64,000 nt of DNA from Auanema rhodensis (lineage: Eukaryota; Animalia; Nematoda): NCBI GenBank assembly GCA_964057225.1, contig OZ059900.1:26869943-26933942 (forward strand). The letters are read 5' to 3'. Within the stretch, counting starts at the first letter, position 1, and the number at the start of each line of letters is the position of its first letter. Shown here piece by piece: positions 56,791 through 57,400 of the stretch. Made by a program: the position numbers and the translations under genes. Below the pieces are notes generated by a model. That model was not told the DNA's origin. It worked only from the letters and a program-made list of their open reading frames with translations, and did no database searches.

Positions 56791-56830
56791 ATATAATCAA
56801 TTAATCAATTAATTAAATAAATAAATAGGC

Positions 56831-56876
56831 AAGCCTAAGCCTAAGCCTAAGCCTAAGCCTAAGCCTAAGCCTAAGC
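56831..56876 (-). repeat. Interstitial canonical nematode telomere tract (TTAGGC)7
   Basis: Seven perfect AAGCCT plus AAGC on the + strand. Confidence 0.95.
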
Positions 56877-57400
56877 TTTATTAAAAAGAGTTATTAAGTA
56901 CGATTCCGCAGCTTTCTTAATATGTTTAAATCTTTAATTCTACCCTTACTTTACGGTACCTGTAACGCCGCCAAAACGAATCTCGATTGGAGTCGAAGTT
57001 CAGGATTGATTTCCTGAAGAATTTCGCGAACCAACCGTTGAAATGGCAATTTGGGGATTAGAAGATTTGTGCTTTTTTGAACTTTTTTGATCTCATTTAA
57101 AAGCCTATAATATTCTACATCACTGAAGCGTTGAAAACAAACAGAGTGACATACATTTTGAAAAATGATCATAAAACGGAGGAGTATCATTAAAACTCAC
57201 TTTTAAAATCCACGGTTTTGGTTTGTTTTTTCTTCTCCTTCCTTCATTTTGAGAAGGCACATCTAAAAAAACTTCGGGTGTTCTAGAATTAGTGGGATTT
57301 CGAGTTGGACCTGCAAATTATCTGAAACTTTGCAGAGAAATACAAATTCAACAAAACCTTGATAATGCGCAGATGGATGGATACAACGTGTACGTGCCAT
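56872..57400 (-). pseudogene. Divergent histone H3 variant-like gene, truncated in the histone fold
   Basis: MARTRCIHPSAHYQ|GPTR...RRRKNKPKPWILK|(A)[47 protein letters not shown]|KAAESYLITLFNKA* aligns to H3 alphaN-alpha2. One extra T at ~57100 breaks the spliced frame, and the stop codon lies in the telomere tract. Confidence 0.85.

Follow-up and report, generated by a model that had tools for sequence, protein, structure and literature searches.

Near the end of scaffold C8 of the Auanema rhodense germline assembly, an H3-like histone gene is truncated inside its fourth exon, and at the exact nucleotide at which its homology to an unbroken paralog ends it passes into a perfect telomere-repeat tract, the G-strand of which runs away from the gene. 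Three bases at the junction belong both to the gene and to the repeat, the missing half of the gene does not reappear across the tract, and the DNA that follows the tract is unrelated to the H3 locus. This arrangement is probably the result of a break in the H3 copy that was capped by telomerase and later buried when the capped end became joined to other DNA. The same course of events had been proposed in the initial annotation of this DNA, which described a break in the gene that was healed and a telomere that was subsequently buried; the abrupt end of the homology, the existence of a paralog that reads on and the polarity of the repeats all support it.

The window analysed here consists of the terminal 64,000 bases of scaffold C8 (26,933,942 bases), and positions given without a scaffold or contig name refer to this window. 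Genome-wide searches covered 180,911,798 bases in 112 pieces. The features surrounding the junction are the following:

55682-56830, no strand assigned: left flank, made up of a tandem pair of Thr/Pro-rich exon-like units and ending at a cut in an AT-rich spacer (genome search and self-alignment)
56831-56876, minus strand: perfect telomere-repeat tract, (TTAGGC)7.7, with the G-strand running 5'->3' away from the H3 fragment
56871-56873, minus strand: stop codon TAG in the reading frame of exon 4, contributed by the first unit of the telomere tract
56874-56876, minus strand: junction overlap GCT, the likely priming site, which fits the repeat register and is also found in the unbroken paralog
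56874-56915, minus strand: exon 4, of which 14 codons remain; the cut falls within helix alpha2, at about residue 108 of canonical H3
56960-57091, minus strand: exon 3, encoding the end of alphaN, alpha1, loop 1 and the start of alpha2 (Pfam and alignment to canonical H3)
57201-57310, minus strand: exon 2, encoding the basic tail and ending ...KPKPWILK (translation)
57358-57400, minus strand: exon 1, starting MARTR like H3 (reading frame inspected by hand)
56874-59438, minus strand: duplicated block in common with the paralog locus, comprising the 5' part of the H3-like gene, an 11-bp satellite and a 10-bp satellite (alignment)
59437-64000, plus strand: end of a Maverick-type element, bounding the block and reaching the scaffold end (97% identity to another copy)

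The H3-like gene is composed of four exons on the minus strand (57400 to 56874), and its final residues, ...LFNKA, are followed directly by the repeat. That H3 homology extends up to these residues, as had been claimed from the letters, was borne out by a Pfam Histone match (E = 1.5e-9 for a longer version of exon 3) and by alignment to the canonical H3 of the same genome, with which exon 3 shares 63% identity over residues 52-92. These values were obtained in searches made exon by exon. Exon 4 is translated as KAAESYLITLFNKA, after which the TAG codon follows. The window copy does not contain a complete histone fold, since loop 2 and alpha3 are missing; it cannot make the fold and is most likely a dead copy. 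When all 64 kb of the window were searched by tblastn with canonical H3 and with the last exon of the paralog, no other H3-like gene was identified. At 38300-40400 in particular, tblastn with canonical H3 and with the exons of the variant gave no H3-like match even with E values of up to 1 allowed.

The tract is 46 bp long and reads as 7.7 perfect AAGCCT units on the plus strand, so that the count of (TTAGGC)7 given in the initial annotation stands for the tract as such, refined to seven full units plus partial ones. The junction AAAGCT|TAGGC, where H3 turns into repeat without a gap, was found exactly as it had been described. In a shuffle control, none of 100 dinucleotide shuffles contained even one 12-mer match to the repeat. 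Telomeric G-strands point 5'->3' toward the chromosome end. As the G-strand here continues 5'->3' from the sense strand of the H3-like gene, the tract caps the H3 side and cannot be the telomere of the left flank. The 3-nt overlap at the junction (GCT) contains GC; an overlap of this length is expected at about 9% of random breakpoints, and the support that it lends to priming is therefore modest.

A genome-wide search with exon 3 returned one close relative, in addition to the canonical H3 arrays and two weak matches. This paralog (L002, at C8:26666808) is located 260 kb away on the opposite strand, and in the gene part it is identical to the window copy at 593 of 599 aligned positions, which corresponds to about 1% divergence. 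The homology between the two copies stops at a single nucleotide after AAAGCT, where the perfect repeat begins in the window copy. Beyond this point the paralog carries 30 further codons and a stop codon, covering helix alpha2, loop 2 and alpha3; its exon 4 matches Pfam Histone (5.6e-7) and shows 49% identity to canonical H3 residues 95-131 in an alignment that crosses the junction. If the acceptor before ATC is taken as the start of exon 3, the lone 1-nt difference that separates the copies falls in an intron, and the paralog has an open frame throughout. The canonical H3 genes also read through the cut point, and a third, more divergent H3 variant (L045:2468-2751, contig C72:12468-12751) reads through the cut region. 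Because the close paralog, the canonical genes and the variant on contig C72 all read on, the intact relatives do not end at the junction. The alignment of the paralog across the junction had been set beforehand as the comparison able to overturn the healing interpretation, which survives it, as the paralog continues as H3.

The missing part of the gene was searched for in two ways. The first 220 bases that the paralog carries past the junction have a single occurrence in the 181-Mb assembly, and neither a protein search nor tblastn identified a replacement C-terminal exon on either strand of the 64-kb window. With no exon for the rest of the fold in the window, splicing around the tract has no substrate there, and healing is not refuted by a downstream exon, which had been named at the outset as the other outcome able to speak against it. 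The six differences from the paralog, the different length of the satellite array and the different neighbour indicate that the window copy is a separate locus and not a chimera built from the paralog locus.

The signs of a healed break are thus found together at this site: homology ends abruptly, the G-strand has the polarity of a cap, the junction matches the telomerase template, and the distal part of the gene is absent across the tract. The gene affected is a recent copy, with about 1% divergence, of an Auanema-specific and presumably germline-restricted H3-variant locus, and this copy would have been broken in exon 4. On the broken 3' end, ...AAAGC(T), telomerase would have primed on the GC(T) match and added TTAGGC, so that the tract would have been made on a free end and a new chromosome end created. 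This neotelomere, presumably very short (46 bp remain), may have failed to protect the end, and the unprotected end would then have been joined to another broken end inside the AT-rich spacer of an unrelated tandem unit. We infer that end joining or fusion, and not copying, brought about the burial. The proposed priming resembles that reported for Oscheius tipulae, in which GGC/GCC serves to prime neotelomeres and, where it is lacking, the nearest GC is used (PMC13060919).

In A. rhodense the chromosome ends are dropped from body cells, and at the programmed breaks new telomeres are added at a 29-nt palindrome (bioRxiv 10.64898/2026.08.27.747507). That this species heals programmed breaks with new telomeres is what speaks for regarding the junction as a programmed elimination break site (SFE), which would be cut and healed in every generation. 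The chance of this is close to negligible: a search of the unbroken paralog for the GGC-spacer-GCC core detected none up to 60 nt from the junction, and a palindromy count, used together with the core search in place of the published weight matrix, gave at best 8 of 14 pairs at the paralog, below the window background mean of 8.8. Moreover, telomere repeats at a break made in the soma would not appear in an assembly of the germline.

As a separate observation, a 57-bp repeat with a near-palindromic GGCGCC core is present in dozens of copies at 752-33510 of the window (e.g., 4039-4146 and 15118-15278). Its core, with 65 to 71 matches, is similar to the published elimination motif at the GGC/GCC centre but lacks the spacer.

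On the other side of the tract, the left flank fills the 1.15 kb from the end of a 176-bp satellite array (55681) to the tract itself, and is unique in the genome. Comparison with its own inner duplicate revealed that flank sequence runs to 56827, leaving GGC at 56828-56830 as an orphan. The initial annotation had noted unrelated sequence past the tract together with a 5-nt TAGGC in the opposite sense. The former holds, as the flank bears no relation to the H3 locus; the inverted TAGGC does occupy 56826-56830, although the first two bases, TA, are part of the AAAT-type repeat of the flank. Consisting as it does of two flank bases and three orphan bases, this motif is too little to claim a head-to-head telomere fusion, a candidate that was set aside as weak. 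The partner side looks like another broken end. It carries no convincing telomere remnant beyond the three orphan bases, and this counts against the preferred explanation of break, capping and burial.

Two further origins for this region were considered and rejected. An insert of the vertebrate interstitial type was discarded as the flanks of the tract are not contiguous in the paralog, which continues with H3 and not with the left flank. A flank derived from telomerase RNA or another RNA was discarded as well: an Rfam scan of 55600-57600 yielded sub-threshold matches alone, all of them to a hairpin at 55801-55932, 900 bases off, and the flank matches its own inner duplicate instead. These matches, of plant microRNA type, fall within an AT-rich inverted repeat of about 220 bases (55757-55978) located between the satellite array and the left flank, and they are most likely meaningless.

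The tract sits 7.1 kb from the present scaffold end and faces the interior of the scaffold instead of the presumed chromosome end. At least one further rearrangement, an inverted joining, must therefore be assumed in addition to the healing. The DNA on the H3 side of the tract belongs to an inverted duplicated block of about 2.6 kb, the counterpart of which at the paralog locus lies at C8:26665590-26667034 in the opposite orientation. Within the block, the 11-bp satellite array spans 1.7 kb in the window as against 0.55 kb at the paralog. Beyond the block follows the Maverick-type element, which is 97% identical to another copy at C8:26637505-26653082 (26.637 Mb), and its orientation is opposite to that expected from a simple inverted duplication. 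It contains an integrase-like open frame on the minus strand (within 59437-64000) and is probably the reason why the assembly stops at the end of the window.

As the block is 2.6 kb long and has a Maverick end on its other side, an origin through a mobile element or through template switching is possible. In the latter case the tract would never have been a free end: a 2.6-kb H3 piece and a telomeric patch would have been stitched into a break in the left flank by template switching or fragment capture. We consider this unlikely, although the shortness and inversion of the copied block, its source only 260 kb off on the same scaffold and the many nearby tracts that could serve as templates are in its favour, and template switching and templated insertions are known from damaged C. 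elegans chromosome ends (PMC8034613). Against it, the tract is perfect and stands in register at a GC match on a truncated 3' end, as a telomerase product would, and two satellite units elsewhere are cut in the same manner at TTAG. The other edge of the supposed insert would be situated beyond the scaffold end, and is hence invisible.

The block itself also served to discard two simpler derivations of the window copy. A processed retrocopy, suggested by an AATAAA located 3 nt before the junction, was ruled out by the retention of all three introns and of 2 kb of upstream satellites. A simple deletion derivative of the paralog locus was ruled out by the downstream 176-bp satellite, which is oppositely oriented relative to H3 in the two loci.

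According to the genome paper, a true chromosome end is approached solely by the right end of the X scaffold (bioRxiv 10.64898/2026.08.27.747507), and C8 may be that scaffold; its last 0.6 Mb are probably discarded from body cells. The assembly was made after the removal of reads starting or ending with more than three telomere repeats (bioRxiv 10.64898/2026.08.27.747507), so true telomeres are not expected in it. This setting bears on whether the 7.1-kb end piece, which comprises the tract, the H3 fragment, the satellites and the Maverick-type element, could be a present-day chromosome end or a separate locus that was misjoined through a chimeric read. The chance of such an artefact appears slight. 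The junction was read from the assembly consensus alone and lies a mere 7.1 kb from the scaffold end, which also weighs against the preferred explanation; read outward from the tract, moreover, the piece resembles a chromosome end, with C-strand repeats followed by subtelomere, and the filtering of telomere-ended reads could distort true ends. On the other hand, a 46-bp tract is far below the length of a HiFi read and is bordered left and right by unique sequence, which means that reads spanning it must underlie the consensus, and the assembly sequence has no gap of N at the junction. Even if the join were false, the truncation of the H3-like gene by de novo telomere addition would stand, and burial alone would fall.

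The H3 tract belongs to a group of similar tracts. In the whole assembly, perfect (TTAGGC)5 is confined to C8:26.309 Mb-26.927 Mb, i.e., the last 625 kb of this scaffold, and to the small contigs C72 and C104. Sixteen tracts of 5 to 24 units each were identified, and all of them were fetched and oriented alike. The upstream side is different in every independent tract (at least 11 kinds). On the downstream side, seven of the sixteen tracts adjoin, at a fixed nucleotide, one of two conserved sequences with a GC-rich hairpin, and six adjoin a 37-bp or 40-bp telomere-derived satellite; unique DNA is found downstream of the H3 tract and of one other. Two tracts, one per strand, cut a 176-bp satellite unit at TTAG, and a third cuts a diverged unit of this satellite with no clear overlap. 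Three other tracts interrupt, in sense, open frames of 272, 330 and 124 codons, for which Pfam gave no matches. In a search for read-through paralogs, the upstream sequences of the junctions at loci L042 and L043 proved to be unique in the genome.

Both hairpin families are restricted to C8:26.3-26.8 Mb and contig C104. Family A is represented at loci L039, L040 and L043 and family B at L037, L041 and L049, with the hairpin situated about 20 nt into the sequence. These families could be subtelomeric blocks of the Y'-like or TALT-like type, or Helitron-like ends. That so many tracts adjoin such sequences at a fixed nucleotide is the ground for asking whether the H3 tract is the terminal part of a mobile element of the hairpin-bearing type, inserted into the H3 copy. 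This is very improbable: the hairpin motif is absent from the whole window when up to three mismatches are allowed, the sequence beside the H3 tract is AT-rich and unique in the genome, and the other half of this H3 copy is found nowhere in the assembly, so that no interrupted target exists.

Several arrangements among the other tracts deserve mention in their own right. At L043:2001-3142 (C8:26780675-26781816), two inward-facing tracts of 21 and 6 units, each of which cuts a long open frame in sense (272 and 330 codons), enclose a 980-bp piece that has inverted repeats of about 20 nt at its ends. At L034:7775-10000 (C8:26653083-26655308), between the paralog H3 locus and a Maverick end, a 1128-bp tandem unit is composed of about 550 bases of unique DNA with the 124-codon frame, six perfect telomere units and the 37-bp telomere-derived satellite. 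On contig C104 (L049:2787-3223), the 176-bp array flips its orientation at 3223, about 320 bases from a 20-unit tract that cuts a satellite unit at TTAG, which places a fold-back junction beside a capped end. On the 30-kb contig C72, a 24-unit tract is located 7 kb from the divergent H3 variant.

A broader and clearly more tentative proposal is that the last 0.6 Mb of C8 might be an archive of ten or more independent germline events of breakage, healing and rejoining, produced by the same GC/GGC-primed activity that is used in somatic elimination; healing would then leak into the germ line and help to build germline-restricted DNA. The word "interstitial" is absent from the main text of the genome paper, and the cluster of tracts is not described there (bioRxiv 10.64898/2026.08.27.747507).

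The preferred explanation has close counterparts in other nematodes. In survivors of telomerase-deficient C. elegans, inverted subtelomeric fragments of 2-7 kb and high identity were reported at fusion sites; one such fragment bore a telomere tract of about 150 bp, and sister-chromatid fusion followed by re-breakage in a holocentric animal was invoked (Kim et al. 2021, PMC8034613). In both cases an inverted piece a few kb long, derived from the same chromosome end, bears a short tract and is placed between unrelated sequences in a holocentric nematode, whereas the C. elegans events occurred in the laboratory after the loss of telomerase and most of their fusion points lack any repeats (PMC8034613). 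In A. rhodense, by contrast, the event is natural, the DNA concerned is probably lost from body cells, and what the tract caps is a break within a gene instead of an eroded natural end. The right end of chromosome V of C. elegans strain CB4856 likewise contains a short buried telomere remnant, with distal DNA added later that includes copies of internal sequence of the same chromosome (Kim et al. 2019, PMC6581047); there, however, it is the old natural telomere that was buried, in direct orientation, and beyond it come template-for-ALT repeats and a copy of 200 kb (PMC6581047), while the A. rhodense tract was added to a de novo break, in the preferred explanation, and is inverted relative to the scaffold end.

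Short interstitial telomeric sequences of vertebrates are also short perfect tracts and scars of a break repair that involves telomerase, but their flanks are contiguous in the ancestral sequence (e.g., PMC8537989), in contrast to the truncated gene and unrelated flank described here. The elimination neotelomeres of O. tipulae and of A. rhodense itself (PMC13060919; bioRxiv 10.64898/2026.08.27.747507) share with the history proposed for the H3 junction that TTAGGC is added directly where the broken end offers GC or GGC as a match. They are, however, programmed and somatic, arise at the 29-nt palindrome and stay terminal, whereas the H3 junction is part of a germline assembly and is not accompanied by such a motif. 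In bdelloid rotifers, as Gladyshev and Arkhipova are said to have described in 2007, chromosome ends are layered, with gene fragments capped by telomere repeats and then followed by other DNA, and the DNA added there is reportedly in most cases a telomere-attaching retroelement. Unlike these rotifer ends, the A. rhodense tract is followed by neither a reverse transcriptase nor a defined element.

The type of scar is thus already known from nematode chromosome ends, and the H3 case is a clean and fresh example of it. It would represent natural chromosome healing within a gene, resolved to the nucleotide, in a nematode whose soma heals programmed breaks in a like manner, and it is found in a 181-Mb genome whose internal perfect tracts are concentrated at one scaffold end (together with contigs C72 and C104). 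If the archive proposal were true, the cut H3 variant, which differs from its source by about 1%, would be the cleanest case in it and the most readily dated, and the end of C8 would hold a layered record of breakage, capping and fusion that would bear on how fast such DNA turns over.
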